Positions 26,726-48,706 of a stretch of DNA of 64,000 nucleotides are shown here, piece by piece. The notes below the pieces were generated by a model, which saw nothing but the letters and a program-made list of their open reading frames with translations, ran no database searches and had not been told where the DNA came from. The translations under genes were made by a program, and so were the position numbers. Within the stretch, counting starts at the first letter, position 1. Each line of letters starts with the position of its first letter. The stretch spans positions 186,001-250,000 of the IMG/VR virus record IMGVR_UViG_3300021963_000023; one strand, written 5' to 3'.

Positions 26726-27460
26726 ATGAATAACATAGGATTTGGAATATTTTGTTTTGGTGAAGACTATTATTATCGAGGAACCAAAGAAAAAATTAAA
26801 CAACTATTAAATGCTGAATTATCTGTTTACGTATTAACAGACAAACCTGAAGAATTTATAGAATACCCACAAGTACATGTTATCCAATACAATAGACACT
26901 TAAAGTCATATTCAGATAAGATGATATTACCAAAATACATCTTAAAAAATCATGATATTTGCATTTTACTTGATGCGGACACACACGTCACAGATTATTC
27001 ATTTTTAGAATTATTAAAAACATATAGTTTTAATAAAGGTGTATCATATATTGATACTTTATTGAATCATAGTGCAAAAAAAGGTATTGTAAAAGATTTG
27101 GTTAATCAAACCAATCCCGAATGGAAAACATATGTTGAATACGCATCTAAACTATATCCACCATTCTTTAATTTTGAAACAATGTGGGAATACTTCTTAG
27201 TTATTAATAAAGATGGATTTGATGTGAATTCATTTTACTATTATTATGAGAAATTACAAGTGGTAAAAGAATTTTCAGACTTACCTTTGAAAAAAGAAAT
27301 AAGTGGTGCGGGTGAAGGTATATCAATACAAATAAGTTGCAAATCTGCTAATATAGAAATACAAAGAGATCTCGTATTGTATGGTTTACTAGAAGGTAAG
27401 ATGATAAGTATAAGTAGAATACACACACCACGACATTTGTGGCCAAATTGGATGAAATGA
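26726..27460 (+). CDS. Putative glycosyltransferase (GT-A fold)
   Basis: 'VYVLTDKPEEF' and the DxD motif 'CILLDADT'; glycosyltransferase neighbourhood. Confidence 0.5.
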   Translation: MNNIGFGIFCFGEDYYYRGTKEKIKQLLNAELSVYVLTDKPEEFIEYPQVHVIQYNRHLKSYSDKMILPKYILKNHDICILLDADTHVTDYSFLELLKTYSFNKGVSYIDTLLNHSAKKGIVKDLVNQTNPEWKTYVEYASKLYPPFFNFETMWEYFLVINKDGFDVNSFYYYYEKLQVVKEFSDLPLKKEISGAGEGISIQISCKSANIEIQRDLVLYGLLEGKMISISRIHTPRHLWPNWMK

Positions 27461-28188
27461 TAACAAATAACGATTACATAAAAAACAATATTACCAACAA
27501 CGGTGATCAACCAGTACCATATAGATGGACACATGGGGCTACCGATTTACATATGGGTGATGGTATTATTGTATATTCTATGATTCAACACATGAGAGCC
27601 AAAAATTGTGTATGTATTGGTTCTGGTGGTGGATTTATACCTAGAATAATGACACAGGCTAGAATCGACTTATATCACGCTAATATCTTTGAGGGTGATG
27701 ATAACCATAGTTGGGGTGATATTGGAGCTACATATGTTGTTGATGCATGTAATGGTATTGGAGGACCAAATGATTTAGATGATAAAAATTCCTTTTATAG
27801 AAAAAATTTTAATCCTAGGTTTATTAAAGAAACCTCGGAAGCTGCGTTTTATAATTTCTTTATTAGACAAGATATTAAAATAGATTTATTATTTATCGAC
27901 GGCGATCATTCATACGAGGGTGTTAAGAAGGATTTTGATCTTTATTCTCAAATATTATCACCCAAAGGTGTTATCATCTTACATGATACGGACGATGAAT
28001 ATGAAGAAACATTAATTGTTTCCGAAGACTCAAAAAAAGATCACCATAGATTTGATGGCCCAAGCAAACTGGTTAAAGAACTCCAAAAAAATTCTGACTG
28101 GAACTTGATTAATTTACATAATTTCCGTATATTAATGGATAAACCATCATCTAGTGGTATAACCATTATTAATAGGAAATATGATTAG
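27457..28188 (+). CDS. Class I SAM-dependent methyltransferase (Methyltransf_24-like)
   Basis: 'VCIGSGGGF' and 'IDLLFIDGDHSYEGVKKDF...GVIILHD'. Start moved to the ATG at 27457, which overlaps the upstream stop as ATGA. Confidence 0.8.
   Translation: MITNNDYIKNNITNNGDQPVPYRWTHGATDLHMGDGIIVYSMIQHMRAKNCVCIGSGGGFIPRIMTQARIDLYHANIFEGDDNHSWGDIGATYVVDACNGIGGPNDLDDKNSFYRKNFNPRFIKETSEAAFYNFFIRQDIKIDLLFIDGDHSYEGVKKDFDLYSQILSPKGVIILHDTDDEYEETLIVSEDSKKDHHRFDGPSKLVKELQKNSDWNLINLHNFRILMDKPSSSGITIINRKYD
28105..28133 (+). promoter_or_regulatory. Internal sigma70-like promoter TTGATT-N17-TATATT
   Basis: Exact 17-nt spacing, about 50 nt upstream of the 28181 start. Confidence 0.45.
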
Positions 28189-28963
28189 GCTTTTAACAGT
28201 TATTGCTGACGGAATTGAATTACTTCCACACTTCATAAAACACTATCGACAATATGTTGATGAAATCAATATTGCTGTTTATGAAACAGATGCACATCCA
28301 TTATTAGGTAATGAAATATCACAACTCATTGGAAATGAGGAGAATGTTAAGATAGTAAAGGTCATTAAAAACAAAACATATGATGTTGATAAGGCCACTC
28401 TATTATATAATTTTATAAAGTCACAAAAGCCAAATGATTGGTGGGTTATTGCTAACATTAATGAATTTCATTTATATCCACACGACAATCTCCGTTATAT
28501 GATTGATAATTGTGAAGAGAATGGTTATCAATTAGTTAGAGGTGGTGTAATAGATAGAATTTCCACAGATAGTCAATACTCACAAATTATTGAAGATCAA
28601 TTAATATTTGATCAATACCCAACAATGGGTTTTTTTGCACACCCGATGAATAAAAAAAACCCTAACAGAGTCTGCGTGATGAAAGGTCATATCGAATTAA
28701 CTCCTGGTCAACACTATGCCAAAATAGATGGTGAAACAACATGGAAGTGGCAAGGATGGGAACATCCATTAATAGCTAAAACATACACAGTTCAAGTACA
28801 TGATTTCAAGTTAGATTCTAAAACTACAGACCAATTAAGAAAAAATAAATTTAAAATAGATTTAAATAACCCAGATTTTATGATTCAGGGTAATGGAGAA
28901 ATACCTAAACATCGGGTTTATAGAAAATGGGATAAACTAATAAAAAAAATAACATCAATATGA
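28181..28963 (+). CDS. Glycosyltransferase family 2-like protein with degenerate DxD motif
   Basis: Paralogue of 31985-32824 ('LPHF.KHY', 'GG..DR', 'GQHYA', 'QVH.FK'), with WVIANINEF in place of WIVSDDDEL. Confidence 0.6.
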   Translation: MIRLLTVIADGIELLPHFIKHYRQYVDEINIAVYETDAHPLLGNEISQLIGNEENVKIVKVIKNKTYDVDKATLLYNFIKSQKPNDWWVIANINEFHLYPHDNLRYMIDNCEENGYQLVRGGVIDRISTDSQYSQIIEDQLIFDQYPTMGFFAHPMNKKNPNRVCVMKGHIELTPGQHYAKIDGETTWKWQGWEHPLIAKTYTVQVHDFKLDSKTTDQLRKNKFKIDLNNPDFMIQGNGEIPKHRVYRKWDKLIKKITSI

Positions 28964-29166
28964 GTACTAAAGCAGAAAAAGAACAAGAAGAATTGCTTTT
29001 GGAACAACGCAAAGTAAAAGCATTAGAAAAAATTGCAAATTCAATGGATGCCTTAACCGTTTGGTTTGAGGAGGTTGATAAACAAGAATGGAGTGATAGA
29101 ATTCAACATTACTTGGCTGAATGGCACAAATCAATACAACCTAAAGATCCAACAATAAATGGGTAA
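28960..29166 (+). CDS. Small hypothetical protein
   Basis: 68 aa, overlapping both neighbouring genes. Confidence 0.6.
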   Translation: MSTKAEKEQEELLLEQRKVKALEKIANSMDALTVWFEEVDKQEWSDRIQHYLAEWHKSIQPKDPTING

Positions 29167-30586
29167 ACATAAATTAGGTATCATTGTTCCGTATCGAAAT
29201 AGAGCAAATCAACTTGGTCTTTTTAAAAGAAGTATGTCACATTTTTTAAAAAAAGAACACATTGATCATGAGATCTTTATTATCGAACAAGATGGTGCAA
29301 AATTATTTAATAGAGGTATGATATTAAACATTGGTTTTAACTATGCGGTAAAGCGTGGTTGTGACTATGTTGCTTTTCATGATATTGACATGTTACCACT
29401 ATATGTAGATTATTCATATTCAGACGTTCCACTTCATTTAGCTACAGACTTCGAATTTGAAAAAGGGGAAAAAGAAAGAGAAATTTTTGAAGAATATTTT
29501 GGGGGTGTAACATTATTCCCGGTTGAAGCATTTAAAAAAATTAATGGTTACTCTAACAAATATTGGGGATGGGGTTATGAAGATACCGATTTATTATTAA
29601 GATGTAGAATTAATGATATTGAATTAAATACCCTAAAAATAAAGAACATGGGTAAAAACGGGAAGGCGTTAAAATTCAATGGAGTAAACACCTATGTTGA
29701 ATGTGAAAACACGATTGATTTAAATAATGATGCAACATTTTTTATTTCCTTTTGCCCAGAAAATATGATATTTGATCATAAAAAAGATAGTGATGAGTTT
29801 ACTGTCTTTAGCATACCTGGATGGGATTTTGCAATATCCTATAATTCTTTTTGTAGATATAATTTTTGTGCATTTGATAGTAAACATACTCCACATTTTG
29901 TTAATTCAGAAATTAAAACCAACTATAAAACAAACATGGTTGTTGTTTTTAATAGAGATGAAAAATTTATCAAGGTGTATCAAGACGGTGAGTTAATTGG
30001 AAAAACAGAATGTTTTAAAAGACTTTTATATTATAAAAAAGAACCAAAATTTTATCTAGGCGCCGGAAAGCCAGAAAGGGAAAAGATACCAAATCACTTT
30101 AAAGGAACAATAGATAGTTTCGCCTACTTCGATAAGATGTTGTCAGAAGAAGAAATTAAAGAAATATCTAATAATGAAACATTTTACTTGAATGAATCTT
30201 TTGGGGAATATAAATCTAAAAACGATCTTAAAATTTATTACGATGGTGATTTTATTGAAAATTATCAGTTAGTTGATTTAAGTAATAATGGTGTAAAAGG
30301 TAAAATATTTAATTGTGAAATAATAAAACAAAACTATCCAGAATATACCGAATTAAAAGTTCCGCATAGAAGAAGATCAAAATTTAAATCAATTAAACAT
30401 GAGGAAAATGGATTTCTGGGAAATAGATGGAAAGATGATAATACCAGATGGAATCAATTAAGATTTCATAATGAGGTTTCTTTAAATAATAATTTAATGA
30501 TTGATGATGGGGTATCAAGTGTGGAATTTGTTCAACACGCATTCATTAAAGACAATAATACGTATCAAGCAATAGTTGGAATATGA
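29159..30586 (+). CDS. GT7-like (beta-1,4-galactosyltransferase-type) glycosyltransferase with inserted LamG/ConA-like domain
   Basis: PYRNR, FNRG, FHDIDMLP, FGGV and NGYSNKYWGWGYEDTD motifs. The insert runs 'ALKFNG...FKGTIDSFAYFDKMLSEEEI...DLSNNG'. Confidence 0.8.
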   Translation: MGKHKLGIIVPYRNRANQLGLFKRSMSHFLKKEHIDHEIFIIEQDGAKLFNRGMILNIGFNYAVKRGCDYVAFHDIDMLPLYVDYSYSDVPLHLATDFEFEKGEKEREIFEEYFGGVTLFPVEAFKKINGYSNKYWGWGYEDTDLLLRCRINDIELNTLKIKNMGKNGKALKFNGVNTYVECENTIDLNNDATFFISFCPENMIFDHKKDSDEFTVFSIPGWDFAISYNSFCRYNFCAFDSKHTPHFVNSEIKTNYKTNMVVVFNRDEKFIKVYQDGELIGKTECFKRLLYYKKEPKFYLGAGKPEREKIPNHFKGTIDSFAYFDKMLSEEEIKEISNNETFYLNESFGEYKSKNDLKIYYDGDFIENYQLVDLSNNGVKGKIFNCEIIKQNYPEYTELKVPHRRRSKFKSIKHEENGFLGNRWKDDNTRWNQLRFHNEVSLNNNLMIDDGVSSVEFVQHAFIKDNNTYQAIVGI

Positions 30587-31992
30587 GTCATAAATTAGGT
30601 ATATGTATACCATATAGAAACAGAAAGGATCACATTGAAAGGTTAATACCTCATTTAACAAAACATTTAAATGAAAAAGGTATTGAACACGCATTTTATG
30701 TTGGGCATCAAATAGATGATAAACTTTTTAATCGAGGTGCAATGAAAAATATTGCAGCTCATTACGCATTTGAAGATGGTTGTGATTATGTGGCTTGGCA
30801 TGATGTCGATATGCTTGGGCACGAGGAATCTGATTATTCATATTCAGATGATACACCGATTCATATCTCAACAAAGTTATCAAAATACAACTATACCTTA
30901 GGTTATGATCAATACTTTGGTGGTGTGGTATTATTCACAAAAGAACAAGCATATAAAACTAACGGTTATTCAAATGAGTATTGGGATTGGGGTCAAGAAG
31001 ATGATGATTTATTTTGGAGATGTCATTTTGAAGGGATGACAACTGGTAGGGTTATAGACACTGAAAAAAACAAACTCATTGCAAATTTCAATGGTGATGA
31101 TTCTGCGATTTATATACCAACTAATCGTGAGATCAGTTCGTGCTTACACAATGATCATACAATAACATTAACCTTTAACGCTGAACAACAAGATGATAAA
31201 GTTCCCATTTTTAGAGTTGGTGATAAGAATAAAAAATTCATAGAATATCCAATATTAAGAAAAGACGGTAGTTGGACCTGGGGAGTTTCATTTAACAATT
31301 CTAGAGCAGTTACTATGTCGTTATTTGATAGAGATGGTTTAAATCATTATAACTGGGCTAAAAGATTTGAGGGTATGTGGACAAAGGTTACTTTTAGTTA
31401 TAGTAGTGAAGAAAAGAATGCATATTTTTATATTAATGATGAGTTGATTTCACAAATAAGTGGTATAAAACAAAACGCACCATTTCTTGTAAAGAATGAT
31501 CTTAAAACACACGATTCAATAAAGCCGTTTTTACTAGGATTTTGTTCACATGTAAACACCAGATTTAAAGGTAAAATATCTGATTTTAAAATTTATAATA
31601 AGTATTTTAGTGATATAAATCTAATATCACAAAATAAAGAAAATATGGTATTGGAAATGGATCTAACAAGTGATGGTATAATTAAACAAAACATAAACTT
31701 AACTAACGAAGACATTGAGATCTTTGAAAATGTTGTACCCTTTAGAAGAGAGGGTAGGTTTTATTGTTTACCACATGTTGATGAAGGATTTATTCATGGT
31801 AACTGGGCCAAAGGTGAAACAACAGCAAAAAATGAAAAACGCTTTGTTACAGAAATGCAACAAGGTAAATTAAACTATAAAGAAGACGGATTAAATAAAA
31901 TATTAGAAGTGTTAGAAATTGATAATGTTGATGAGACACTATACCCTAATACTAAATTTATAAATGTTAAAATGATTACCAACTATGCTTAA
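30583..31992 (+). CDS. GT7-like glycosyltransferase with inserted LamG/ConA-like domain
   Basis: PYRNR, FNRG, WHDVDML, FGGV and NGYSNEYWDWGQEDDD motifs. The insert runs 'NFNGDDS...W..VTFSY...FYIND...FKGKISDFKIYN'. Confidence 0.8.
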   Translation: MSHKLGICIPYRNRKDHIERLIPHLTKHLNEKGIEHAFYVGHQIDDKLFNRGAMKNIAAHYAFEDGCDYVAWHDVDMLGHEESDYSYSDDTPIHISTKLSKYNYTLGYDQYFGGVVLFTKEQAYKTNGYSNEYWDWGQEDDDLFWRCHFEGMTTGRVIDTEKNKLIANFNGDDSAIYIPTNREISSCLHNDHTITLTFNAEQQDDKVPIFRVGDKNKKFIEYPILRKDGSWTWGVSFNNSRAVTMSLFDRDGLNHYNWAKRFEGMWTKVTFSYSSEEKNAYFYINDELISQISGIKQNAPFLVKNDLKTHDSIKPFLLGFCSHVNTRFKGKISDFKIYNKYFSDINLISQNKENMVLEMDLTSDGIIKQNINLTNEDIEIFENVVPFRREGRFYCLPHVDEGFIHGNWAKGETTAKNEKRFVTEMQQGKLNYKEDGLNKILEVLEIDNVDETLYPNTKFINVKMITNYA

Positions 31993-32824
31993 CCTCGTAA
32001 CAGTAGTTGGAAGAAACACTCACATATTACCTCATATGCTAAAACACTATGAAGGTATGGTAGATAAGATATATGTTGGTGTTTATAGACAACACGAAAA
32101 CGATGGTATCTTAGAAGAAGTTAGAAATCTTGGTATTGAACCATTTATAGTTGTTACTGAACCAAAGTATAATTGGAATAAGGTAACTGAAATGTATAAT
32201 ACCATTAAGCGTACCAAACCTAATGAATGGTGGATCGTTTCAGATGATGATGAGTTACAAGTATACCCATATGATATCAGAGATATCATTAAAGAATGTG
32301 AAGAAAATAATTTTACATTTGTAACCGGTGGATTTTTAGATAGATTAGGGGAAGGTGGAACATTTCCTATTGTTGAAAGAGATAGTGATATACATAAGCT
32401 ATTCCCATATGCTGGATTTTTCAGATACCCAATGTCAAATGCGTGCCCGAATAAAGTCACACTAATGCTTGGTTCTCAAGATGTTACATCTGGCCAACAT
32501 TATGCTGATTTTGGTAATAATAAGAATAGTTGGGGTAGATGGCATAGAAAAAGAATGCCAATTGATATTGTTTTCACACAAGTACATCACTTTAAATGGG
32601 ATTCTACATGCAATACCAGAATTAAGGAGGTTGCGGATACTAGAATTGATTATACTTGGTTCTGGGAGTATGAAAAATTATATGAAGAGTTAGAAAAGAA
32701 CAAGTGGATTGTAGATATTAATAAACCTGAGTTTTTATTTGAAAAACTAGATAATTTTTCGTATATTAACTTTAATGACTATTCAAAATGGGATGTCTTA
32801 AGAGATAAAATTGTAACAATTTAG
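31985..32824 (+). CDS. Glycosyltransferase family 2-like protein
   Basis: 'LPHMLKHY', 'WWIVSDDDEL', 'GGFLDR', 'QVHHFKW'. Confidence 0.65.
   Translation: MLNLVTVVGRNTHILPHMLKHYEGMVDKIYVGVYRQHENDGILEEVRNLGIEPFIVVTEPKYNWNKVTEMYNTIKRTKPNEWWIVSDDDELQVYPYDIRDIIKECEENNFTFVTGGFLDRLGEGGTFPIVERDSDIHKLFPYAGFFRYPMSNACPNKVTLMLGSQDVTSGQHYADFGNNKNSWGRWHRKRMPIDIVFTQVHHFKWDSTCNTRIKEVADTRIDYTWFWEYEKLYEELEKNKWIVDINKPEFLFEKLDNFSYINFNDYSKWDVLRDKIVTI
32739..32767 (+). promoter_or_regulatory. Internal sigma70-like promoter TTGAAA-N17-TATATT
   Basis: 17-nt spacer, about 60 nt upstream of the first radical SAM gene. Confidence 0.45.
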
Positions 32825-32827
32825 ATA

Positions 32828-34186
32828 ATGAGCAAAAAAACACCAGTTAGTGATACTTTCTGTATTTTACCATGGACGCATTTAATGATACAACCAAATG
32901 GTAATATACAACCTTGTTGCATGACCCCACATGATATGCCAATCGGTAACACCAAAGAAGATACCTTAGAGGAAGTGTGGAACGGATTTGTTATGAAGAA
33001 CATTCGTAAAAAAATGTTAAAGGGAGAAAAACCTATGCTTTGTAATAGATGTTACATGATGGAAGATAACGGTGCGGTTAGTCCTAGAGTTAACATGACT
33101 GAAAAGTTTGGTGCTGATGTTGATAAAATGATTGCAAACACAAATAGAGAAACTGGCCACAATAATGATTTTTCTTTAAAGTATTGGGACTTTAGATTCT
33201 CTAACATTTGTAATTTTAAATGCAGAATGTGTGGAACGTTTGCTAGTAGTAAATGGGCGGATGATGAAATGGCTATTCATGGTCAATCCAATAATGGGTT
33301 AATGAATTTTAGAAGTGAATCCAGAGAAGATATCATGAACTATGTGGATAAATTTATTGGTGATGTCCAAGAGATTTATTTTGCTGGCGGTGAACCACTG
33401 ATCATGGATGAACATTATATTATTTTAGAAAAGTTAATTGCTGCAGGTAGAACAGATGTAATTTTAAGATATAATACAAACTTTAGTCACATACAATTTA
33501 AAAAATGGGATTTAAATAAACTATGGGAACCATTTATTAATTGTGCTAAAAATCCAAAGGGTAGAGTGCAATTATTTGCGTCGTTAGATGCAGTTGGGCC
33601 TGTTGCAGAATTAGCTAGACATGGCACTGTTTGGGAAAACGTCTATAAAAATATTGAAACCGCGCTCAAGTTGGGTGTTGAGGTTTTTGTTTCCCCAACA
33701 ATTAGTATACTAAACGTCTTTCATGTTACTGATTTATTTGATGCGATTGTTAAATTAGGAATCAAACCTTCATATATTATCTTCAATAATTTTTTAACAG
33801 ATCCACAATGTTATGATATAAGAATCTTACCTGAAGATCTAAAAGAAGAATTAATGAATAAGCTAGAATCATATCACAAGAACTTACCAGAAGGTGCATA
33901 CAAAAACGCTATTGGTTCAGCAATCGGTGCCTGGGTTCATTTTCTTTATTCTGAAATTAATATAGATTTATTACAATTACAAATCAGTAGAAGAGAACTA
34001 CTAAGAGTTACAACAATATTAGATGTTAGAAGAAATGAAAACTTCTTAGATGTTAATCCACAATATAAAGATTGGTTTAAAGAGGTTAGAGCAACGGTTA
34101 AAAACTATGAGACTGAAGAATTTTTCTTTAGAGATAGAAGTTTACCTGACCCACCTAATGAAATACCTAAAACAATCGAAAACTAA
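32828..34186 (+). CDS. Radical SAM enzyme with N-terminal twitch/SPASM-like domain (1 of 6)
   Basis: N-terminal C..PW.H...G...PCC...CxxC, then CNFKCRMC, FAGGEP and YNTN. Confidence 0.9.
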   Translation: MSKKTPVSDTFCILPWTHLMIQPNGNIQPCCMTPHDMPIGNTKEDTLEEVWNGFVMKNIRKKMLKGEKPMLCNRCYMMEDNGAVSPRVNMTEKFGADVDKMIANTNRETGHNNDFSLKYWDFRFSNICNFKCRMCGTFASSKWADDEMAIHGQSNNGLMNFRSESREDIMNYVDKFIGDVQEIYFAGGEPLIMDEHYIILEKLIAAGRTDVILRYNTNFSHIQFKKWDLNKLWEPFINCAKNPKGRVQLFASLDAVGPVAELARHGTVWENVYKNIETALKLGVEVFVSPTISILNVFHVTDLFDAIVKLGIKPSYIIFNNFLTDPQCYDIRILPEDLKEELMNKLESYHKNLPEGAYKNAIGSAIGAWVHFLYSEINIDLLQLQISRRELLRVTTILDVRRNENFLDVNPQYKDWFKEVRATVKNYETEEFFFRDRSLPDPPNEIPKTIEN

Positions 34187-36485: not shown

Positions 36486-36486
36486 G

Positions 36487-42589: not shown

Positions 42590-43203
42590 TAAACGGGTAC
42601 CACATATTTGATGATATAATTCCAGAATTAAATCAAAATAAATTAGAAGAATATGTTAAGTTTTCAAATTTAAAATGGAATTATCAACACAACATTACGG
42701 GGCTATATGGTGGAACGGATTCATTAGAATTACCCGCAAATGTTTTAAAGGGTATTGATATTACAGACACTACAATTCTTAATATAATAAATTCAATAAA
42801 GTTAAATTTACTAAATAAACTTAATTTGGAATTTGAAAAGGATTATCGATATAAAATAAATTGGACCACCCCTATAGGAAAAAAATATGATTTTAAAAAT
42901 TTAATACATATTGATATGGATGTGGCCCATATTGCTATTGTTTATTATATAAACGATACCGATGGCAACACTATTTTTTTAAATAATAAAAATGGAAATT
43001 CTTCAGAATCCCATCAAAATAATTTTAAAGGTGTCAATTTGGATGATTTTGAAATTGTAAATAGAATACCACCCAAAAAAGGTAGGGCGGTTATATTTGA
43101 TGGTAACATTTATCACTATGGCGAATACCCAACAATAACCGATAGATTTATAATTAATTTTGATTTAGTTGGTAAAAATAAGAACAAAAATAAATTAATA
43201 TAA
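42586..43203 (+). CDS. 2OG-Fe(II) oxygenase
   Basis: HID...YYINDTDG.T...PKKGRAVIFDG..YH...RFIINF. Ends KNKNKLI. Confidence 0.75.
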   Translation: MINGYHIFDDIIPELNQNKLEEYVKFSNLKWNYQHNITGLYGGTDSLELPANVLKGIDITDTTILNIINSIKLNLLNKLNLEFEKDYRYKINWTTPIGKKYDFKNLIHIDMDVAHIAIVYYINDTDGNTIFLNNKNGNSSESHQNNFKGVNLDDFEIVNRIPPKKGRAVIFDGNIYHYGEYPTITDRFIINFDLVGKNKNKNKLI

Positions 43204-43204
43204 T

Positions 43205-43843
43205 ATGGAAAAGATATTTTTTGATGACACAACATACATTTGGAAAACCAAATTAAATTATACAGGTGATAAATCATCTTTTTTAAAAGAAGCGTACTCT
43301 CTTATAGAATCCCAACCTAAAGTTAAATCAGATGGATTTGGATATAAAAGAGAATGGAACGAACATTTAAATTTTATTGGTGATGTTAAGGTTGAAACAA
43401 AATTAGATGAAATTTTTAAAATCGGTATTAATAAATGTAAAGAAATTTATAATGAAAAAAATATAAATTACAATAAAATCAATACAGACTCTTGGGTTAA
43501 TGTTGTTCGATCAAAAAATCCAGTACAAGACAATTTTCACAATGGTAAAAAATATCATATACATACCGAAATTAATAAAGGAAACAAACAATTTATTCCA
43601 CACTATACATATGTTTATTATATTCAAATGCCAGATGTAATGAATGGCGATGATGGTGTATTGTGTTTTTTAGGTGAAAATAAGAAAGAATATTTCATCA
43701 AACCAGAAGAAGATGATTTAATTATTATGGAGGCACATATCCCACACTCTCCAAATAGTGCACCAAACTCCACATTAGATAGAATAGTTATGGCTGGAAA
43801 CGTTGGTTTTGATTTTATTAAAAAAGAAAAAACAATATTATAA
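43205..43843 (+). CDS. Putative 2OG-Fe(II) oxygenase
   Basis: SWVN...HIH...YVYY...PEEDDLII...PHSP...RIVMAGN. Ends KKEKTIL. Confidence 0.7.
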   Translation: MEKIFFDDTTYIWKTKLNYTGDKSSFLKEAYSLIESQPKVKSDGFGYKREWNEHLNFIGDVKVETKLDEIFKIGINKCKEIYNEKNINYNKINTDSWVNVVRSKNPVQDNFHNGKKYHIHTEINKGNKQFIPHYTYVYYIQMPDVMNGDDGVLCFLGENKKEYFIKPEEDDLIIMEAHIPHSPNSAPNSTLDRIVMAGNVGFDFIKKEKTIL

Positions 43844-44565
43844 TGCTAGTAGAAAATAAATTTTTATTTGTAAATCTACCAAGATGTGCTTCAACCTCTT
43901 TTCATATATCATGTTTAAGAAGTGGATTTAAAATTGAACATTACGGCCAATCATTTGTAGACAATTATCATACACCAATTAATTTAACACTTAGTAATGA
44001 AGAGCTAGCAGACAACATGGTTCATCTTCATGAAAGATTAGATGTGTTACTTTCAAAATTTGGGAATGAATATGATATCATATCCATAAAAAGAGATAAG
44101 TACGAAAGATTCTTATCATTGTGGAAGCATATAATCGATATAGCACACATGGAAGGTAATATCGAATTATATAATATATTTAAAAAACTAGAGTTAGAAG
44201 ATATTTTATTTTATAATTATTCAGATTTAATATCGAATGAGGAGTCTGTAATATCTGAATTTGTGAGAAGAAATAAAATTGAAAAACATATGACAGACAT
44301 TCTTTATACTATGTTAATTATTTTAGTTAGACATGTCTCATTTTGGCATAATAATAATCCCAAAATAAAATGGTTTGAATTTGGTGAGTTTACAGAATTA
44401 GAAGAATGGGTTTCTAATAAAACAGGTAAACCATTTAAAATGGGGAAATCAAATGGAAGTCAACATTTTGATTGCAAATTAAAAATGAATAGTGATTTCA
44501 TAAAAAGATATAATAATATTTATGATTATTATGATTTTCAAAAAAATGTTAAGACACTAATATAA
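43843..44565 (+). CDS. Sulfotransferase-like protein (Sulfotransfer_2-like)
   Basis: 5'-PSB-like 'FVNLPRCASTS' and 3'-PB-like 'RDKYERFLSLW'. Ends KNVKTLI. Confidence 0.65.
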   Translation: MLVENKFLFVNLPRCASTSFHISCLRSGFKIEHYGQSFVDNYHTPINLTLSNEELADNMVHLHERLDVLLSKFGNEYDIISIKRDKYERFLSLWKHIIDIAHMEGNIELYNIFKKLELEDILFYNYSDLISNEESVISEFVRRNKIEKHMTDILYTMLIILVRHVSFWHNNNPKIKWFEFGEFTELEEWVSNKTGKPFKMGKSNGSQHFDCKLKMNSDFIKRYNNIYDYYDFQKNVKTLI

Positions 44566-44566: not shown

Positions 44567-44869
44567 ATGATTAACACCCCTAATATCGATTATAAAGAAA
44601 TATTTGAAGCCTGGAAAATTTCACTCAAACCAACACTAAAACAAGAAGAATTGGCTAAACTTAGGCTTGAGGTTTGTTTGGGGTGTAATTATAGAAAAGA
44701 AGTGGTTAAGGGGTTAAAATGGAGCACTCTTTGTGGAAAATGTGGATGCCCCTTAAATAAAAAAGTGTTTTCCCCAAATTATAATTCCTGCCCAGAAAAA
44801 TTATGGGGTGATATTGATTCTAATTATTTGGAACCTCTTAACCCCAAAAATAAAAACACTTTAATATAA
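44567..44869 (+). CDS. Small Cys-rich (metal-binding) protein
   Basis: R..VCLGC...CGKCGC.L..K......CP..W. Ends KNKNTLI. Confidence 0.65.
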   Translation: MINTPNIDYKEIFEAWKISLKPTLKQEELAKLRLEVCLGCNYRKEVVKGLKWSTLCGKCGCPLNKKVFSPNYNSCPEKLWGDIDSNYLEPLNPKNKNTLI

Positions 44870-44954: not shown

Positions 44955-46448
44955 ATGAAAGCAACAATAATTGGTAGTGATTTTTTACAAAAAGATGGTT
45001 CGGTCAAATTTTTGGAAATAAATACAAACACCACAATCTATAATGAGGGCGCGGATTTGTTAGAATATGACGCGTTATTTAATATGTTAAATGTTAATAA
45101 TATTACAGAATTTCATTATATATGGACGGAAAATGATGCATATAGCCCATTAAATCAGGCACACAGATTTGTGCAAATATTAAAAACAAAATGTGAGGAA
45201 AATAATATATCATATACTGATCATATTGTGCCAATGAATTCGGTAACTGTACCTTTTATTGAAGACGCTAATAATAAATTTATCTTAAGACAGTCCTTTG
45301 ATACTACCGCATTGGTAGATGAAACATATTGTGCTGATAAATTTGAATTTTTTAATTTAATGAAAGATTCACAATATATCCCCAAAACACATTACACATC
45401 GGATACATTAAATTTAAATACTTTGGATGAGGTGAATTATACTGATACTGAAAACCCAAACGTATTAATAAAATATCGTTATCCACAATATGATAAATCA
45501 TTATACCCGGCCCTATATGCAGTTTCTAATAATACCGAATTATCTGATACAATAAATTCTGCTGAAAGTAATTTTTTAGTTCAAGAATTTATATTTTCAG
45601 AAGAAAATTTGGTGGAGGGTAGATATTCGATTATAAGAGGGATTGATATCATATATGGGTCTAATTTAGATGTTATTAATATGGGTGGCTATAGTCAATC
45701 CACGATAATACCGGTTTTATTTGCAACTACAGAACTTATTCCCAATACAAAAAAATTAAACCAAAAAAGTAGATACAAATATATTACAAAAGATGTTGGT
45801 GGATCAAAAGGAAAAGATTATCATACCGATGATGATTCAAATATTTTAAACTATGATGGCTCATTAACAAATGTTAGTACAATACAATTGGGTGATTATG
45901 TTCGTTCTATTAATTTTGTGGATTCAAATGAAAATGAAGCTAAAGCTTTTACTAATGAAATTTTAACATACGGTTGGGATAGTACATTACAGCAATCAAA
46001 TGACACATTAGTACCATTACAATCTGAATTAGTGGGTATGATATCATCATCAGTTGAAATGGTAATGATAAAAATAACATTAGAAGATGGTAGAACTTGG
46101 TCAGATACTCCTGCGTGTGTATATTATATTGAAGAAAAAGATTCAACAGCAACTAGGTTTGAAAAGGTAAATAGTCTATATGTTGGTGATAAATTAGTTA
46201 TAACCGATTCAAATACTAATCAATTAACAACCATAACAATTACGGGATTAGAAATGATATATGAAACCAAAACAATTTACACATTAGATTTTGCACCTTC
46301 TGATTTATTCTTAGTTGATATTGGCGATTTTCAATTTAGTGTAATGCATAATGGTTGCTGGTGTAGTTATTCATATTGTGGTAACTGGTGTTATTCATCA
46401 TGGTGTCCAACCTGTCAATATGGCGGGTTTCAAAAATTTCAACCCTAA
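44955..46448 (+). CDS. Circularly permuted ATP-grasp domain + Hint (intein-like) domain + C-terminal 31-aa Cys-rich peptide
   Basis: ATP-grasp motifs: 'GSDF...DGSVKFLEINTN' at the N-terminus, then 'ADKFEF...IPKT', 'VLIK' and 'LVQEFI'. Hint blocks: 'ILNYDGS...IQLGDYV', 'ITLEDGR...T', 'LYVGDKL' and 'IYTLDF..SDLFLV...VMHN'. These are followed by GCWCSYSYCGNWCYSSWCPTCQYGGFQKFQP. Confidence 0.75.
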   Translation: MKATIIGSDFLQKDGSVKFLEINTNTTIYNEGADLLEYDALFNMLNVNNITEFHYIWTENDAYSPLNQAHRFVQILKTKCEENNISYTDHIVPMNSVTVPFIEDANNKFILRQSFDTTALVDETYCADKFEFFNLMKDSQYIPKTHYTSDTLNLNTLDEVNYTDTENPNVLIKYRYPQYDKSLYPALYAVSNNTELSDTINSAESNFLVQEFIFSEENLVEGRYSIIRGIDIIYGSNLDVINMGGYSQSTIIPVLFATTELIPNTKKLNQKSRYKYITKDVGGSKGKDYHTDDDSNILNYDGSLTNVSTIQLGDYVRSINFVDSNENEAKAFTNEILTYGWDSTLQQSNDTLVPLQSELVGMISSSVEMVMIKITLEDGRTWSDTPACVYYIEEKDSTATRFEKVNSLYVGDKLVITDSNTNQLTTITITGLEMIYETKTIYTLDFAPSDLFLVDIGDFQFSVMHNGCWCSYSYCGNWCYSSWCPTCQYGGFQKFQP

Positions 46449-46482
46449 GATTTTTAATAAAAATATAAAATAAAAACATATC

Positions 46483-46629
46483 ATGGCAAAGACCCCAAAA
46501 ATAAGAGAAGAAAGACCATCAACTGTTATCAAGTTAGTAATTAGTCCACTATCTACGGATGTAAAGACAAAAATATCAACAGCATTTCAAGCAGTTGTTA
46601 CCGCTATAAAAGATAAACACTTATCATAA
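46483..46629 (+). CDS. 48-aa basic small protein, not in the ORF track
   Basis: ATG at 46483 to TAA at 46629 (MAKTPKIREERPSTVIKLVISPLSTDVKTKISTAFQAVVTAIKDKHLS). It has an A-rich leader and fills an otherwise empty gap. Confidence 0.6.
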   Translation: MAKTPKIREERPSTVIKLVISPLSTDVKTKISTAFQAVVTAIKDKHLS

Positions 46630-46664
46630 GTTAAAAAGACGAATGTTTGTTCATCCATTTATAT

Positions 46665-47234
46665 ATGATAAATCATTCAATCAATAATAACGTATTTACA
46701 CAAACCGAATGTCTTGATATAATTGATTTTTGTATTCAACACGGTAAACCTTTTTCATATCGTCCGAATGAATTTTGGGATTGTAGAAGAATACATGATG
46801 AGGGATTTAAGGAACAAATAATTACTTCATTAATGAATAATTATAAAACCGGGAATTTTAATTTATGGTTTGATTTTGATGATTTTAATCTAAGGAATTT
46901 TCTTATTAGTTTAACATCTTATTACGATGGTAGATACCTAAATTTACACAAAGATATTGATAGTGAGTTAACGTCGGTAATTGTATTATCAAATGGATTT
47001 GAAGGTGGTCAATTCGCATTAAGTGATAGTAACAGACCAGATATTCATTTTAATAAAATGGATGATATTACTACTTATGATTTAAAAATTGGTGATATGA
47101 TATCCTTCAATGGGTCAAAAACCTATCATGGGGTTTTACCGGTCACAAATGGTACACGATATGCCTTAAATATTTGGATGGATAACATCAATTCTGACCG
47201 ATTAAAACGTAAAGTTGAAAAAACATTGATATGA
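46665..47234 (+). CDS. 2OG-Fe(II) oxygenase
   Basis: HKD...FEGGQF...GDMISF..YHGVLPVTNGTRYALNIW. Start moved to the ATG at 46665. Ends KVEKTLI. Confidence 0.85.
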   Translation: MINHSINNNVFTQTECLDIIDFCIQHGKPFSYRPNEFWDCRRIHDEGFKEQIITSLMNNYKTGNFNLWFDFDDFNLRNFLISLTSYYDGRYLNLHKDIDSELTSVIVLSNGFEGGQFALSDSNRPDIHFNKMDDITTYDLKIGDMISFNGSKTYHGVLPVTNGTRYALNIWMDNINSDRLKRKVEKTLI

Positions 47235-47728
47235 GTATATTAATTGTTGCATTACCTAGAACCGGTTCAACTTCATTATTATATAAATTAGCAAAAGAAA
47301 AGGGATTAACTCCGATATTTGAACCATTCGATAATAGTGGAAGATTTAAGTATAATGGTGAAAAAAACGTAGTCCTTAAAACAATAATATGTCATCACCC
47401 AAACAATTTTGAATTAAGTAAGTACTTTGACAAGGTAATATTATTATCTAGAAAAAATATATTAGAATGTGTAGAATCTCACGCATACCAAATCTACTTC
47501 TCAAAAAAGAAAAATTACAATTCAAATCATCAATATTATTACGAAGAAGTACCATCTAAGTTATTTGATTTATGTTATAATGATGTAATGAAATGGAATA
47601 AGGATTTGAGTGAATTATCTTATAGACTTAACACCCCAATTACATATTATGAAGACATATATGATATCAATAGTAATGAAAGATTACGAAAAGGGAATAA
47701 AAGTGAATTTAATAAAAAACTAATTTAA
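47231..47728 (+). CDS. Sulfotransferase-like P-loop protein
   Basis: 'VALPRTGSTSL...EPF...ILLSRKN...ES...YYEDIY'. Ends NKKLI. Confidence 0.65.
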   Translation: MSILIVALPRTGSTSLLYKLAKEKGLTPIFEPFDNSGRFKYNGEKNVVLKTIICHHPNNFELSKYFDKVILLSRKNILECVESHAYQIYFSKKKNYNSNHQYYYEEVPSKLFDLCYNDVMKWNKDLSELSYRLNTPITYYEDIYDINSNERLRKGNKSEFNKKLI

Positions 47729-47733
47729 TTATT

Positions 47734-48141
47734 GTGAATTATACAACACCATATGATTTTTTAAAAAATTGTGTAATGACTAGAATCAAACCAAGTGGGG
47801 TACACGGTGTTGGTGTTTTTGCAATTAGGGATATTAAAAAGGGTGAAACCGTTTTTGAATTTTGGCAAGGAAAAACGGGGATATATGAAATTTCTAAAGC
47901 TGAGTTTGACACCTTTTCAGAGGAATTACAAGATTTTATAAGAGCAATGCGTGGTCACCCGTATAAAGTTAAACTTACAAATGGGTGTGTATATGGTTGT
48001 ACAAATCATTATATTAATACAAATTTTGAAAACGGAACGGTTGATTGTTTCACATTTAAAGCATTGGCCGATATTCCATTAAATGAGGAGTTGTTTAGTA
48101 ATTATGGGAATAACCATAGACATGAATATAAATTAATATAA
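47734..48141 (+). CDS. SET-domain protein (putative lysine methyltransferase)
   Basis: 'PSGVHGVGVFAIRDIKKGE', 'YIN', 'ALADIPLNEELFSNY'. GTG start. Ends EYKLI. Confidence 0.8.
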   Translation: MNYTTPYDFLKNCVMTRIKPSGVHGVGVFAIRDIKKGETVFEFWQGKTGIYEISKAEFDTFSEELQDFIRAMRGHPYKVKLTNGCVYGCTNHYINTNFENGTVDCFTFKALADIPLNEELFSNYGNNHRHEYKLI

Positions 48142-48142
48142 A

Positions 48143-48706
48143 ATGATTATTACAATACTATGTGAACCTAGAAGTGGATCTACAAATTTGGCCAATTGGT
48201 TTTTTATAAGAAAGGATTTCACGGTATTATATGAACCATATAATATTAAGTCAGAATGGTACAAGAACAAAATACCACCCCAAAACTGGGAATTTACAAC
48301 TGAACATCTATTAATAAAGGAAATTTATTCAAAAGAAATAAATTATACCGATTTATTAGACATATCAGACAAAATCATTATTCTTTATAGAGAAAATGAA
48401 TATGAACAATCGCTATCCTGGGAAAATGCTGTTGCAACAAATAACTGGGATAGGCCGTGGGTTTATGAAGAAAACTCTGAAAAAAAACAAACCGTAGGGT
48501 TGGATTATTTTTATGATATAAAAGAAGGTATTAAAGAAAATTATATTAATAAGAATTATTTCACAATATCATACGAAGAATTATATTATAATAATGGGTT
48601 TCAAAGGGTTGTGGATTACCTTAATATTGATGGTGTTGAGAACACTGGGTTCCCATATGGCCAGAAATATAGAATTAATACTGACAAACCCAGGCCATTA
48701 ATTTAA
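48143..48706 (+). CDS. Sulfotransferase-like P-loop protein (Stf0-like)
   Basis: 'EPRSGSTNL...EPY...IILYREN..EQSLS...ISYEELY'. Ends KPRPLI. Confidence 0.65.
   Translation: MIITILCEPRSGSTNLANWFFIRKDFTVLYEPYNIKSEWYKNKIPPQNWEFTTEHLLIKEIYSKEINYTDLLDISDKIIILYRENEYEQSLSWENAVATNNWDRPWVYEENSEKKQTVGLDYFYDIKEGIKENYINKNYFTISYEELYYNNGFQRVVDYLNIDGVENTGFPYGQKYRINTDKPRPLI

Follow-up and report, generated by a model that had tools for sequence, protein, structure and literature searches.

Two putative modification modules lie side by side in an uncultured aquatic T4-like jumbo phage

Results

We analysed a 64,000-nt window (positions 186,001 to 250,000) of the IMG/VR record IMGVR_UViG_3300021963_000023, which derives from an uncultured aquatic T4-like jumbo phage of a deep-branching lineage whose major capsid protein is only 33-42% identical to that of any cultured phage. 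It contains a 22-kb island of enzyme genes whose ORF boundaries match 26726-48706 exactly. All of its genes lie on the plus strand and are tightly coupled, with 22 of 27 internal junctions having a gap of 5 nt or less. The initial annotation had described five glycosyltransferase-like genes, two methyltransferases, six radical SAM enzymes, a sulfate-activation pair, five 2OG-Fe(II) oxygenases and three sulfotransferase-like genes between Ser/Thr-rich fibre genes, and this observation holds, although the support for individual assignments varies.

The upstream flank (21128..24598, +) encodes a repeat-rich, fibre-like protein of 1156 aa that is 30% Ser+Thr and matches no Pfam or PHROG family. 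It is 36% identical over 590 aa to the downstream flanking protein (48783..53099, +), a repeat-rich, fibre-like protein of 1438 aa that is 32% Ser+Thr. T4-like long-tail-fibre genes lie further upstream. Between the upstream fibre gene and the island (24600..26690, +) are three paralogous C1q/TNF-like head proteins (24600, 25515 and 26106; 36-51% identical, with weak C1q hits and a match to phrog_15750) and a 96-aa ORF (25225), and the same set lies between fibre and cassette in two related loci, L176 and L213. The fibres and C1q-like proteins contain no collagen-like GXY runs.

The first part of the island, which we call module 1 (26726-40481), begins with a 244-aa GT-A-like protein (26726..27460, +) that is assigned by motif only: it has a DxD motif and no HMM hit, its Atlas look-alikes are viral nucleotide-diphospho-sugar transferase clusters, and it occupies the first cassette position in 26 of 80 loci. 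It is followed by a class I SAM methyltransferase (27439..28188, +; Methyltransf_24, 49.7 bits against a Pfam cut-off of 26.3), whose orthologs in the relatives G002 (a complete 288-kb genome) and G003 are 56-57% identical. Two GT2_4-like glycosyltransferases, a and b, are paralogs at 31% identity and are only weakly supported, both falling under the Pfam cut-off (28181..28963, +, E 0.008; 31985..32824, +, E 7.8e-6); the ortholog of the second in G002 is 58% identical. Between them lie a 68-aa ORF (28960..29166, +), for which a homolog sits at the same position in 79 of 80 loci (counting the G2_6859 type and the s68 type together), and two strongly supported GT7 (beta-1,4-galactosyltransferase-like) enzymes (29159..31992, +; 29159-30586 and 30583-31992). 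Each of these has Glyco_transf_7N and 7C domains over the Pfam cut-offs and a C-terminal LamG/ConA-like lectin domain (Laminin_G_3). The best solved relative of the GT7 domain is beta4GalT7 (B4GalT7; E 1e-28), an invariant HDxDM motif is seen, and all Atlas clusters with this architecture are viral.

Module 1 ends in an array of radical SAM enzymes. All six radical SAM genes of the island have an intact CxxxCxxC motif, and five are N-terminal-twitch enzymes (N_Twi_rSAM, NF033640) scoring 264-377 bits against an NCBIfam cut-off of 170. The first (32828..34186, +; 377 bits) carries CxxxCxxC at residue 128 and N-terminal Cys at 12, 30, 31, 72 and 75, and the other four (35211..40481, +; 35211, 36487, 37960 and 39258; 264-358 bits) are paralogs 20-29% identical to each other. 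The copy number of such enzymes runs from 0 to 6 across 80 loci. The sixth enzyme (34192..35211, +) is of a different type, which we call rSAM349: it scores only 67 bits, and its orthologs, 38-41% identical in 23 loci around the 497-aa gene described below, sit in module 2 of relatives, after the 174-aa sulfotransferase-like gene.

The second part, module 2 (40520-48706), opens with a triad (40520..41540, +) conserved in 27-40 loci: an APS kinase (40520; 63 bits in Pfam), an overlapping 126-aa HxGH nucleotidyltransferase (40951) and a 69-aa DUF2061-like membrane protein (41331). The nucleotidyltransferase is closest to NMN adenylyltransferase (profile hit E 2e-6) rather than to a canonical ATP sulfurylase, and the triad holds the only TM-like segment in the island. 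Four P4H-type 2OG-Fe(II) oxygenases follow (41550..43843, +; 41550, 42026, 42586 and 43205; 2OG-FeII_Oxy_3), conserved in 64-68 loci, and a fifth 2OG oxygenase lies at 46647. Three of the five are over the Pfam cut-off and two under it, and all five carry HxD/E...H. Next come a 240-aa sulfotransferase-like protein (43843..44565, +; PHROG Gal-3-O-sulfotransferase, E 3e-4), present in 76 of 83 loci, and a 100-aa Cys-rich, Zn-ribbon-like protein (44567..44869, +; Zn95, phrog_13558), present in 78 of 83 loci and always directly upstream of the 497-aa gene. The module closes (46647..48706, +) with the fifth 2OG oxygenase, a sulfotransferase-like gene (47231), a SET-domain methyltransferase (47734; 33.2 bits, over cut-off) and a sulfotransferase-like paralog (48143). 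The SET gene occurs only in 4 near-identical loci. In the three sulfotransferase-like genes (43843, 47231 and 48143) both PAPS-binding motifs are visible by eye, but HMM support is weak and below threshold, with weak Sulfotransfer_3 hits in 7 of 14 family members.

At the core of module 2 is a previously undescribed 497-aa protein (H497, gene start 44955), for which an AF2 model was obtained with a pLDDT of 87.8. Residues 1-283 (44955..45803, +) are predicted to fold as an ATP-grasp ligase-like domain (VIA Z 8.5-10 to YgiC, GspS and glutathione synthetases), in which D9, E21, N23, R112, D122 and R228 are invariant. Residues 286-466 (45810..46352, +) are predicted to form a Hint/intein-fold domain (Z 14-16 at about 2 A rmsd to BIL, intein and Hedgehog Hint domains) that ends in His465-Asn466, which are invariant in 58 diverse sequences. 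The domain has no Cys/Ser at intein position 1 (Y289/H290) and no TxxH block. Residues 467-497 (46353..46448, +) form a hypervariable tail with a fixed six-Cys framework (C-W-C-x4-C-G-x2-C-x4-C-P-x-C): we found 114 distinct tails among 119 sequences, always with six Cys, and entropy is 1.44 in the tail against 0.68-0.98 in the body. The model leaves the tail disordered (pLDDT about 30) and does not dock it on any domain. Searching 50,697 phage records by tblastn, we found no homolog of this protein.

Directly after H497 is a conserved Lys-rich protein, 48 aa here (46483..46629, +; the 47-aa partner s47), present in 79 of 83 loci and predicted to bind the ATP-grasp domain. The complex model scored 0.83 against a best control of 0.02, a mark reached by 58 of 80 solved complexes and 2 of 110 mismatched pairs; the runs agree in at least 80% of contacts and the partner pLDDT is at least 77.

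Synteny had been put forward in the initial annotation as a way to ask whether the island's content follows the 44955 tail or particular fibres, and when we compared about 160 related viral contigs the island split in two. The GT7-LamG gene keeps the order (GTx)-MT-GT2_4-s68-GT7a-GT7b-N_Twi across 80 loci, whereas H497 keeps the order APSK-NT126-DUF2061-2OG-(halogenase-like)-2OG-2OG-ST-Zn95-H497-s47-(c273)-2OG-ST-(rSAM349 or c414) across 83 viral loci, with N-terminal-twitch radical SAM genes next to it only in 2 near-identical loci. Among the 80 GT7 loci, none showed the 497-aa gene within 10 kb, and only 2 showed APS kinase and 2 the Zn95 gene. The two gene sets are often 25-60 kb apart, with no fibre near module 2 in those cases; in G002 they are more than 50 kb apart, and in two other loci, L003 and L012, module 2 lies between phoH/hsp20 and UvdE/helicase genes.

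Module 1, in contrast, travels with fibre genes. Of 55 loci with at least 5 kb of upstream flank, 43 have a fibre-like ORF upstream, at a median gap of 2.8 kb, and homologs of the 21128 protein lie upstream of the cassette in related loci. A fibre downstream of the cassette is seen only here and in the closest relative (L168), and in 0 of 66 other loci. In G002 the cassette continues with three epimerase/dehydratases, a dTDP-sugar 3,5-epimerase and a TPP enzyme, and the same holds in about 12-24 other loci, placing the radical SAM array in a sugar-nucleotide context in relatives. No TM segment was found in the island enzymes or in the 17 cassette genes of G002, in keeping with a soluble acceptor.

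Discussion

Our data suggest that the island is a juxtaposition of two independent, lineage-wide phage modules rather than one pathway. What the analysis establishes is the gene content, the two-module synteny, the folds and the conserved residues, whereas every substrate and every reaction is inferred; no modification of any substrate has been shown, and no experiment or expression data exist (no RNA run was listed). We therefore present the following proposal as only somewhat more likely than not. Module 1 would be a cytoplasmic glycan-building cassette at the 3' end of the tail-fibre gene block, most likely building and tailoring O-linked glycans on the Ser/Thr-rich fibre proteins as they assemble, with the radical SAM enzymes acting on the sugars, accompanied in relatives by nucleotide-sugar epimerases/dehydratases, an RmlC-like enzyme and a TPP enzyme. 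It should be noted that N-terminal-twitch radical SAM enzymes have no characterised member, and that their cellular contexts are uninformative or point to carbamoyltransferase-containing clusters of unknown product.

Module 2 would be a peptide or small-protein modification cluster. In this view the APS kinase and the small HxGH nucleotidyltransferase supply PAPS to two or three sulfotransferase-like enzymes, three to five P4H-type 2OG oxygenases hydroxylate, the SET enzyme (here) methylates, and a Trp-halogenase-like enzyme (in relatives) halogenates; SET and P4H-type 2OG families usually act on proteins. The Hint domain of H497 probably cuts at Asn466 and frees the hypervariable six-Cys peptide, while its ATP-grasp domain binds s47. 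However, since the Hint domain lacks the N-terminal nucleophile and the TxxH block, even C-terminal cleavage is an inference from the invariant His-Asn, and the 126-aa enzyme is not a known ATP sulfurylase.

The interpretation offered in the initial annotation, a pathway of hydroxylation followed by glycosylation, sulfation or methylation that decorates virion proteins or the Hint-released peptide rather than DNA, is partly supported. The enzymes are soluble and lie in the fibre region, no ThyA-type or TET/JBP entry enzyme for DNA modification was found in the 251-kb record (75% complete), the glycosyltransferase cassette travels with fibre genes, and the 44955 product does contain a predicted Hint fold ending in His-Asn before a Cys-rich tail. 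The idea of a single pathway is not supported, as the 2OG, sulfotransferase and PAPS genes belong to a module syntenic with the Hint protein and often located tens of kb from the glycosyltransferases and from any fibre; nor does the radical SAM array fit it, sitting in a sugar-nucleotide context in relatives.

Of the alternatives, the one that survives best, although we consider it unlikely, is that module 1 remodels a host surface glycan (O-antigen or capsule) to block superinfection or to change recognition. The host recognition cluster of pelagimyophages shows the same arrangement of fibres, glycosyltransferases and radical SAM cassettes, and there the glycosyltransferases were read as modifiers of the host O-chain (PMC7029224); a host-glycan reading has also been proposed for the LPS clusters of cyanophages, whose sugar clusters have been read as capsule decoration (PMC7824862), and the nucleotide-sugar enzymes of relatives are typical of O-antigen loci. 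However, we found no flippase, polymerase, ligase or polyprenol-phosphate transferase in the 28 island genes or in the 17 genes of the extended cassette, nor any other membrane protein apart from the DUF2061-like protein of module 2. The exclusively viral GT7+LamG architecture in the Atlas and the fixed position and strand of the cassette directly after the fibre genes also argue against this reading.

Somewhat less likely still, one or both modules may make a diffusible secondary metabolite, a halogenated, hydroxylated or sulfated compound derived from an amino acid or sugar, rather than a modified protein. This was predicted for the tandem 2OGFeDO and Trp-halogenase arrays of cyanophage Syn9 and for the S-SSM6a cluster with carbamoyltransferases (Iyer et al.; PMC2938197, PMC7824862), relatives of our phage carry Trp-halogenase-like and carbamoyltransferase genes, and cellular N-terminal-twitch arrays are followed by a carbamoyltransferase. 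Against it, there is no NRPS, PKS or amino-acid-activating scaffold, the most conserved genes of module 2 encode non-enzymatic or self-processing proteins (H497, s47 and Zn95), and both the usual targets of SET and P4H-type enzymes and the predicted tight H497-s47 complex point to a protein substrate.

The single linear pathway, in which the fibres would be hydroxylated, glycosylated and then decorated by the sulfotransferases and methyltransferases, is also unlikely. It draws on the contiguity, shared direction and tight coupling of the genes here and in the closest relative, on the fibres on both sides, and on bacterial operons combining beta-hydroxylases, sulfotransferases and PAPS synthetases with phage tail-collar or collagen-like proteins (PMC2938197), but the separate synteny of the two gene sets and the lack of collagen-like repeats argue against it. 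Finally, hypermodification of the phage DNA is very unlikely: although phage GT-A and GT-B enzymes, together with epimerases, do build glycans on 5hmC (bioRxiv 10.1101/2023.12.21.572611), no thymidylate-synthase-family (ThyA-type; dCMP hydroxymethylase) or Tet/JBP gene was found in the 251-kb record (which is only 75% complete, and where the Tet_JBP control gave no signal anywhere), the 2OG enzymes are P4H-type, and the cluster is not next to replication genes.

Among described systems, the host recognition cluster of pelagimyophages and cyanomyophages (Zaragoza-Solas et al. 2020, PMC7029224) is likewise a large variable island inside the structural region of T4-like aquatic myophages that mixes tail-fibre genes with glycosyltransferases and radical SAM cassettes. 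Here, however, the cassette is not hypervariable, having a fixed gene order in 80 loci and a fixed place after the fibres, it uses phage-specific GT7+LamG enzymes rather than GT8, and the phage belongs to a different, deep-branching lineage. In virion glycosylation of mycobacteriophages (Freeman et al. 2023, cited in PMC12619734 and PMC12801897) and capsid or fibril glycosylation of giant viruses, virus-encoded soluble glycosyltransferases also sit next to structural genes and decorate virion proteins in the cytoplasm. Those cases were shown by mass spectrometry, whereas here virion glycosylation is inferred, and they use different glycosyltransferase families; to our knowledge none has radical SAM arrays or lectin-fused GT7 enzymes.

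For module 2, the tandem 2OGFeDO, Trp-halogenase, sulfotransferase and PAPS clusters of cyanophages and bacteria (Iyer et al. 2010, PMC2938197; Iyer et al. 2021, PMC7824862) similarly place several distantly related 2OG oxygenases with halogenase-like, sulfotransferase and PAPS-supply genes, and were predicted to modify peptides or make metabolites, but those descriptions contain no ATP-grasp-Hint protein, no 47-aa partner and no Zn-ribbon protein. Enzyme-core fusion RiPP precursors (borosins such as OphMA) also fuse a modifying enzyme to its own C-terminal core peptide, and sulfated RiPPs (RaxX/RaxST/RaxPQ) combine a peptide sulfotransferase with a dedicated PAPS supply; no modification is shown here, and release by a Hint domain, and an ATP-grasp as the fused enzyme, are not known for any RiPP class. 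Bacterial intein-like (BIL) and Hedgehog-type Hint domains, including PT-HINT of polymorphic toxins and the Tetrahymena BUBL BIL domains, share the predicted fold and the C-terminal His-Asn, and the placement of the Hint domain just before a variable C-terminal payload recalls PT-HINT toxins. In H497, which lacks the position 1 nucleophile and the TxxH block, the payload is a 30-aa six-Cys peptide and the domain is fused to an ATP-grasp ligase domain, while longer relatives add one or two canonical Hint domains after the His-Asn.

Genomic setting and gene content

The window (bases 186001-250000) comes from a linear IMG/VR virus record of 251,149 bp that CheckV rates 75% complete. The phage has a T4-type major capsid gene, whose product is only 33-42% identical to any capsid in 50,697 phage records, the nearest being those of an uncultured 484-kb phage, Rhodothermus RM378, Microcystis Mel-JY01 and Flavobacterium phages. 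A cyanophage origin was considered and rejected, since there is no psbA and the capsid relatives are these phages at low identity. Megablast of the island against the same 50,697 records gave no match, and tblastn of a radical SAM gene gave only 22-26% hits to KVP40-like phages. GC content is 26-37%, lowest in the second half of the island, and all genes of the region lie on the + strand.

Every ORF listed in the initial annotation is present and the span 26726-48706 matches gene boundaries, so that the observation of a modification-enzyme island among fibre genes is confirmed. Of the 27 junctions inside the island, which had been described as mostly translationally coupled, 22 have a gap of 5 nt or less. 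The flanking proteins of 1156 and 1438 aa are 30-32% Ser+Thr, full of serine-rich repeats and homologous to each other, and T4-like long-tail-fibre genes lie upstream. No GXY runs were found, which led us to reject collagen-like substrates.

Pfam, NCBIfam and PHROG scans supported the enzyme assignments to varying degrees. Of the five glycosyltransferase-like genes, two encode strong GT7 enzymes with a C-terminal LamG/ConA-like domain, two are weak GT2_4-like paralogs, and one, the GT-A-like protein encoded at 26726, is supported only by a DxD motif and by look-alikes in the Atlas. The two methyltransferases are a Methyltransf_24 enzyme and a SET enzyme, and all six radical SAM enzymes have intact CxxxCxxC motifs. 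All five 2OG-Fe(II) oxygenases are of the P4H type (PF13640) and carry the HxD/E...H iron triad; those encoded at 41550, 42026 and 46647 score over the cut-off, whereas those at 42586 and 43205 score under it.

The proposed sulfate-activation pair holds only in part. The APS kinase is clear (PF01583 at 63 bits against a cut-off of 21.1, covering profile positions 4-112 of 152), but no recognised ATP sulfurylase (Sat or CysDN) was identified: the partner encoded at 40951 is a 126-aa HxGH nucleotidyltransferase nearest to NMN adenylyltransferases, and only its constant pairing with the kinase, in 27-38 loci and in one cellular-MAG locus, suggests a sulfate-adenylylating role. In the three sulfotransferase-like proteins (43843, 47231 and 48143) the 5'-PSB loop (PxxGS/T-T/S) and the 3'-PB motif (RxxxxxxS) are both visible by eye, and R10, G12, R74 and S83 are invariant in the corresponding family alignment (A5). 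However, Sulfotransfer_3 was matched only weakly, in 7 of 14 members (best E 0.027), the PHROG match to Gal-3-O-sulfotransferase was at E 3e-4, and no PDB sequence hit fell below E 0.3, which leaves their membership in the PAPS-dependent sulfotransferases undecided. Searches against solved structures were likewise of no use for the second GT2_4-like protein (b) or for the protein encoded at 26726.

Two conserved modules in related viral loci

To ask whether the island behaves as a unit, we fetched 83 viral loci around homologs of the 497-aa protein encoded at 44955 and clustered all their ORFs. One order recurs: APS kinase, 126-aa nucleotidyltransferase, DUF2061, 2OG, (Trp-halogenase-like), 2OG, 2OG, 253-aa sulfotransferase-like, 95-aa Zn-ribbon-like, the 497-aa gene, a 47-aa gene, (a 273-aa gene), 2OG and 174-aa sulfotransferase-like. 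It ends with either a 349-aa radical SAM (18 loci) or an unrelated 414-aa gene (13 loci), and never both. The N-terminal-twitch radical SAM genes of the window are found next to this module only in two near-identical loci.

We then fetched 80 viral loci around GT7-LamG homologs, and a second fixed order emerged: (GT-A-like), methyltransferase, GT2_4-like, a 65-77-aa ORF, GT7-LamG a, GT7-LamG b and an N-terminal-twitch radical SAM, followed by a variable extension. In the complete 288-kb relative G002 the two modules are more than 50 kb apart, and in two further loci (L003 and L012) the module of the 497-aa gene lies between phoH/hsp20 and UvdE/helicase genes, with no fibres nearby. Only in the window and its closest relative (L168) are the two modules adjacent and followed by another fibre gene. 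In the window, module 1 spans 26726-40481 and module 2 spans 40520-48706.

Module 1: a glycosyltransferase cassette next to fibre genes

A synteny comparison had been put forward in the initial annotation as a way to see whether the island content follows particular fibres, and for the glycosyltransferase cassette it does. Of 55 loci with at least 5 kb of upstream sequence, 43 have a fibre-like ORF upstream of the cassette, in 42 of them by homology to the window's own fibre genes, at a median distance of 2.8 kb, whereas none of 66 loci has one downstream.

The two GT7 proteins score over the Pfam cut-offs for Glyco_transf_7N and 7C (74/65 bits and 55/73 bits). Their catalytic domains match beta4GalT7 and beta4GalT1 (E 1e-28 to 1e-23, with beta4GalT7 at E 1e-28) and keep the HDxDM site, with H74-D75-x-D77, the DxD metal site, invariant in the alignment of the family (A7); donor and acceptor were not examined. 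Every Atlas cluster with the GT7+LamG architecture is viral. A GT-A catalytic domain joined to a lectin domain is also the layout of the animal polypeptide GalNAc-transferases that glycosylate Ser/Thr-rich mucins, a comparison that we offer as an analogy only. In G002 the cassette continues with three NAD-dependent epimerase/dehydratases, a dTDP-4-dehydrorhamnose 3,5-epimerase and a TPP enzyme, and the same genes follow in many other loci; in the window's own record one epimerase lies at the contig end. Two unannotated genes of the extended G002 cassette (L165:12072-13490 and L165:15633-16775) share a C-terminal motif (...ETx8-9(F/Y)I(T/S)EK..KPI...PFI..G) that resembles the fucosyltransferase (GT10-type) motif and is a lead for further glycosyltransferases.

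No gene of the island or of the 17-gene cassette in G002 has a membrane segment, apart from the 69-aa DUF2061 protein of module 2. There is thus no flippase, polymerase, ligase or polyprenol-phosphate transferase, which argues for a soluble cytoplasmic acceptor.

Five of the six radical SAM genes (32828, 35211, 36487, 37960 and 39258) belong to NCBIfam NF033640 (N_Twi_rSAM), scoring 264-377 bits against the curated whole-protein cut-off of 170, while that at 34192 scores 67 bits and is not a member; it is instead the ortholog of the radical SAM that sits in module 2 in 23 relatives. The family has its auxiliary-cluster (twitch/SPASM) domain at the N-terminus and no characterised member. The CxxxCxxC motif lies at residues 113-136 in all six proteins, four to five Cys, as expected for an auxiliary Fe-S centre, lie within the first 85 residues, and Pfam SPASM matches residues 9-76 in three of them. 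The paralogs are only 20-29% identical, so the array is old, and copy number varies from 0 to 6 among loci. From the sugar-nucleotide neighbours we infer that these enzymes tailor sugars, although nothing shows it. A seventh radical SAM gene of the window (58062-59063, 333 aa), not of the N-twitch type, lies among conserved phage genes of unknown function (phrog_1409, 1604, 1458 and 14035).

The N-terminal-twitch family also occurs in cellular genomes, mainly Bacteroidota, Bdellovibrionota and Elusimicrobiota, at 30-37% identity, often as tandem arrays of 2-6. Arrays of 5-6 were seen in Haliscomenobacter, Legionellales and Oligoflexia MAGs (contigs L087, L088, L090 and L135). In two such arrays, L087 and L088, a 240-aa gene and a NodU/CmcH-type carbamoyltransferase follow; L088, which may be a mis-binned phage contig, also has a B12-radical SAM, a 2OG oxygenase, and homologs of the APS kinase and the 126-aa nucleotidyltransferase. 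A single-copy case in a 3.85-Mb chromosome has an uninformative context, and the cellular contexts as a whole gave no function for the family.

Module 2: a predicted ATP-grasp-like and Hint protein with a variable tail

The 497-aa protein has 648 homologs at 60% identity or more, all metagenomic and unnamed, and a profile search found 315 cluster representatives, whereas tblastn found none in the 50,697 phage records. An AF2 model built from 17 close homologs was poor (pLDDT 43), but one built from 58 diverse homologs is confident (pLDDT 87.8, pTM 0.83) and divides into three parts. Across these 58 members the invariant residues are M1, D9, E21, N23, R112, D122, P185, R228, H465 and N466.

Residues 286-466 superpose on BIL, intein and Hedgehog Hint domains (VIA Z 14-16, rmsd 1.9-2.5 A over 135-150 aligned residues; Foldseek E 1e-7 to 1e-5). 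The structural alignments end exactly at Asn466, and the C-terminal His-Asn (block G) used for Asn cyclisation is invariant in 58 diverse and 119 close sequences. The features needed for N-terminal cleavage or splicing are absent: intein position 1 aligns to Tyr289/His290 rather than to a Cys, Ser or Thr nucleophile, and there is no TxxH block B, the only His residues in this region being H290 and H465. The domain is therefore not a splicing intein and at most cleaves at its C-terminus; the invariant His-Asn suggests such cleavage, by Asn cyclisation. Atlas look-alikes carrying PT-HINT turned out to be longer family members with an extra Hint domain, so that this hit alone did not prove a Hint in the 497-aa protein. 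Such longer relatives, of 600-766 aa (P0242, P0244, P0250, P0359, P0365 and P0372), carry one or two canonical Hint domains recognised by Pfam and starting with Cys, directly after the conserved His-Asn or after the Cys-rich stretch, and they end only 1-4 residues after their own His-Asn, which suggests thioester-based transfer rather than release of a payload.

Residues 1-283 superpose over about 200 residues on ATP-grasp ligases of the YgiC, glutathionylspermidine synthetase and glutathione synthetase group. The scores (Z 8.5-10) exceed the usual background of 7-8, but not by far, and there is no Pfam hit, so that despite the invariant E21-x-N23 motif, R112, D122 and R228 the assignment stays tentative; nucleotide binding was not assayed. 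The remaining residues, 467-497, are disordered in the model. This tail keeps six Cys in a fixed framework while its other positions vary, with 114 distinct tails among 119 sequences and an entropy of 1.44 against 0.68-0.98 in the body. Loci with the Trp-halogenase-like gene average slightly more Trp in the tail (3.2 against 2.5 without it), but this was not corrected for relatedness, which confounds it, and we do not count it as evidence.

The 47-aa gene downstream is present in 79 of 83 loci, and its product is Lys-rich, without Cys, and conserved along its whole length. A complex model supports its binding along the ATP-grasp-like domain, with a score of 0.83 against a best control of 0.02. 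That mark was reached by 58 of 80 solved complexes and 2 of 110 mismatched pairs, although these counts hold only roughly because our own alignments were used. The three runs agree in at least 80% of contacts, the partner pLDDT is at least 77, and the contacts include residues next to the invariant D9, E21/N23, D122 and R228.

The surrounding enzymes are of kinds that act on peptides and proteins: P4H-type 2OG oxygenases, a SET methyltransferase, sulfotransferase-like proteins with their own putative PAPS supply and, in relatives, a Trp-halogenase-like enzyme. Most module 2 genes (41550-48706) end in ...(K/N/T)LI-stop, encoded by a recurring CTAATATAA / TTAATATG junction that overlaps the next start codon. 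The ending is conserved in relatives, where the consensus of the sulfotransferase-like families also ends in KTLI or KLI, and it looks like a conserved coupling or regulatory signal. The T4 late-promoter motif TATAAATA is not enriched in the window (13 found, 16 expected) and gave no basis for inferring expression timing; no RNA sequencing run was listed, and only DNA contigs were available. One of only three + strand copies of this motif (44865-44872) lies 83 nt upstream of the 497-aa gene, inside the largest intergenic gap of the island (85 nt).

Discussion

The gene content, the two-module synteny, the modelled folds, the invariant residues and the lack of membrane parts come directly from our analysis, whereas the activities that follow are inferences from them. 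We propose that module 1 builds tailored O-glycans on the Ser/Thr-rich fibres in the cytoplasm, with the LamG domains holding the enzymes on substrate and the radical SAM enzymes altering sugars. In module 2, the APS kinase and the small nucleotidyltransferase would make PAPS; the oxygenases, sulfotransferase-like proteins, SET and radical SAM enzyme would modify the six-Cys tail and/or the 47-aa partner; the Hint domain would release the tail at Asn466; and the ATP-grasp-like domain would form an amide bond that involves its bound partner. We consider this overall picture somewhat more likely than not. The earlier interpretation, a pathway that decorates virion proteins or a Hint-released peptide rather than DNA, is partly supported, as the single pathway that it implied does not fit the synteny.

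Among the alternatives, remodelling of a host glycan is the published reading for similar islands (PMC7029224; PMC7824862), but it lacks any membrane machinery here and seems doubtful. A diffusible metabolite, as predicted for related cyanophage clusters (PMC2938197; PMC7824862), appears less likely still, since it fits less well with a module whose most conserved genes encode a putatively self-processing protein and two small proteins. A single fibre-decoration pathway is unlikely, being contradicted by the separate synteny. DNA hypermodification is very unlikely, as its entry enzymes are lacking in the available, though incomplete, record.

Fibre islands with glycosyltransferases and radical SAM cassettes, and tandem 2OG/halogenase/sulfotransferase clusters in phages, have both been described and left without experimental function. 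What is new here is the resolution of this island into two lineage-wide modules, the fixed post-fibre position of a phage-specific GT7+lectin cassette, the sugar context of the N-terminal-twitch radical SAM arrays, and the predicted ATP-grasp-like and Hint protein with its hypervariable six-Cys tail and predicted 47-aa partner, of which our literature searches on related topics returned no description.

A bolder possibility, which our data do not rule out but which we regard as unlikely, is that the 497-aa protein founds a new kind of self-processing peptide system in phages, fusing an ATP-grasp enzyme, a Hint domain that works as a built-in C-terminal protease, and a hypervariable six-Cys core peptide. 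The core peptide, or the tightly bound 47-aa partner, would be hydroxylated, sulfated, methylated or halogenated by the surrounding enzymes with a phage-encoded PAPS supply, and then released or ligated during infection. Evidence that this is a RiPP biosynthetic cluster is only indirect (the hypervariable Cys-framework tail after a putatively self-cleaving domain, the conserved neighbouring tailoring enzymes and the predicted peptide partner), and neither modification nor release of a precursor was measured here. The more than 600 metagenomic homologs and the variants carrying extra canonical Hint domains suggest a large unexplored family.

If module 1 glycosylates fibres, a large lineage of aquatic jumbo phages tunes its receptor-binding organelles with its own lectin-guided glycosyltransferases and radical SAM sugar chemistry, which would bear on host range and on recognition by host defences, and would give the uncharacterised N-terminal-twitch radical SAM family its first testable context. 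If module 2 works as proposed, it would be the first case of Hint-mediated release of a modified peptide in a virus, and would offer a compact, expressible system (the 497-aa protein, the 47-aa protein and a handful of enzymes) for studying new post-translational chemistry. It would also bear on whether a 126-aa NMNAT-like enzyme can serve as a minimal ATP sulfurylase.

The host may belong to the Bacteroidota. Only 4 of 55 + strand genes in the window have a Shine-Dalgarno-like core at -20 to -5, and the upstream 20 nt are 52% A; together with a BACON domain in a fibre-like protein of G002 (L165:1614-3767), this hints at, but does not prove, such a host. Near-identical DNA of the 497-aa gene (44955-46448) is held by 20 public metagenome runs from at least 12 studies, labelled marine, estuary, lake and freshwater (many of them freshwater), so that either the lineage crosses the salinity divide or the labels are loose. 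Finally, directly after the downstream fibre gene lie three tandem paralogs (53119-56506; 379, 368 and 369 aa) of phrog_1417, of unknown function, which are also present in related loci.
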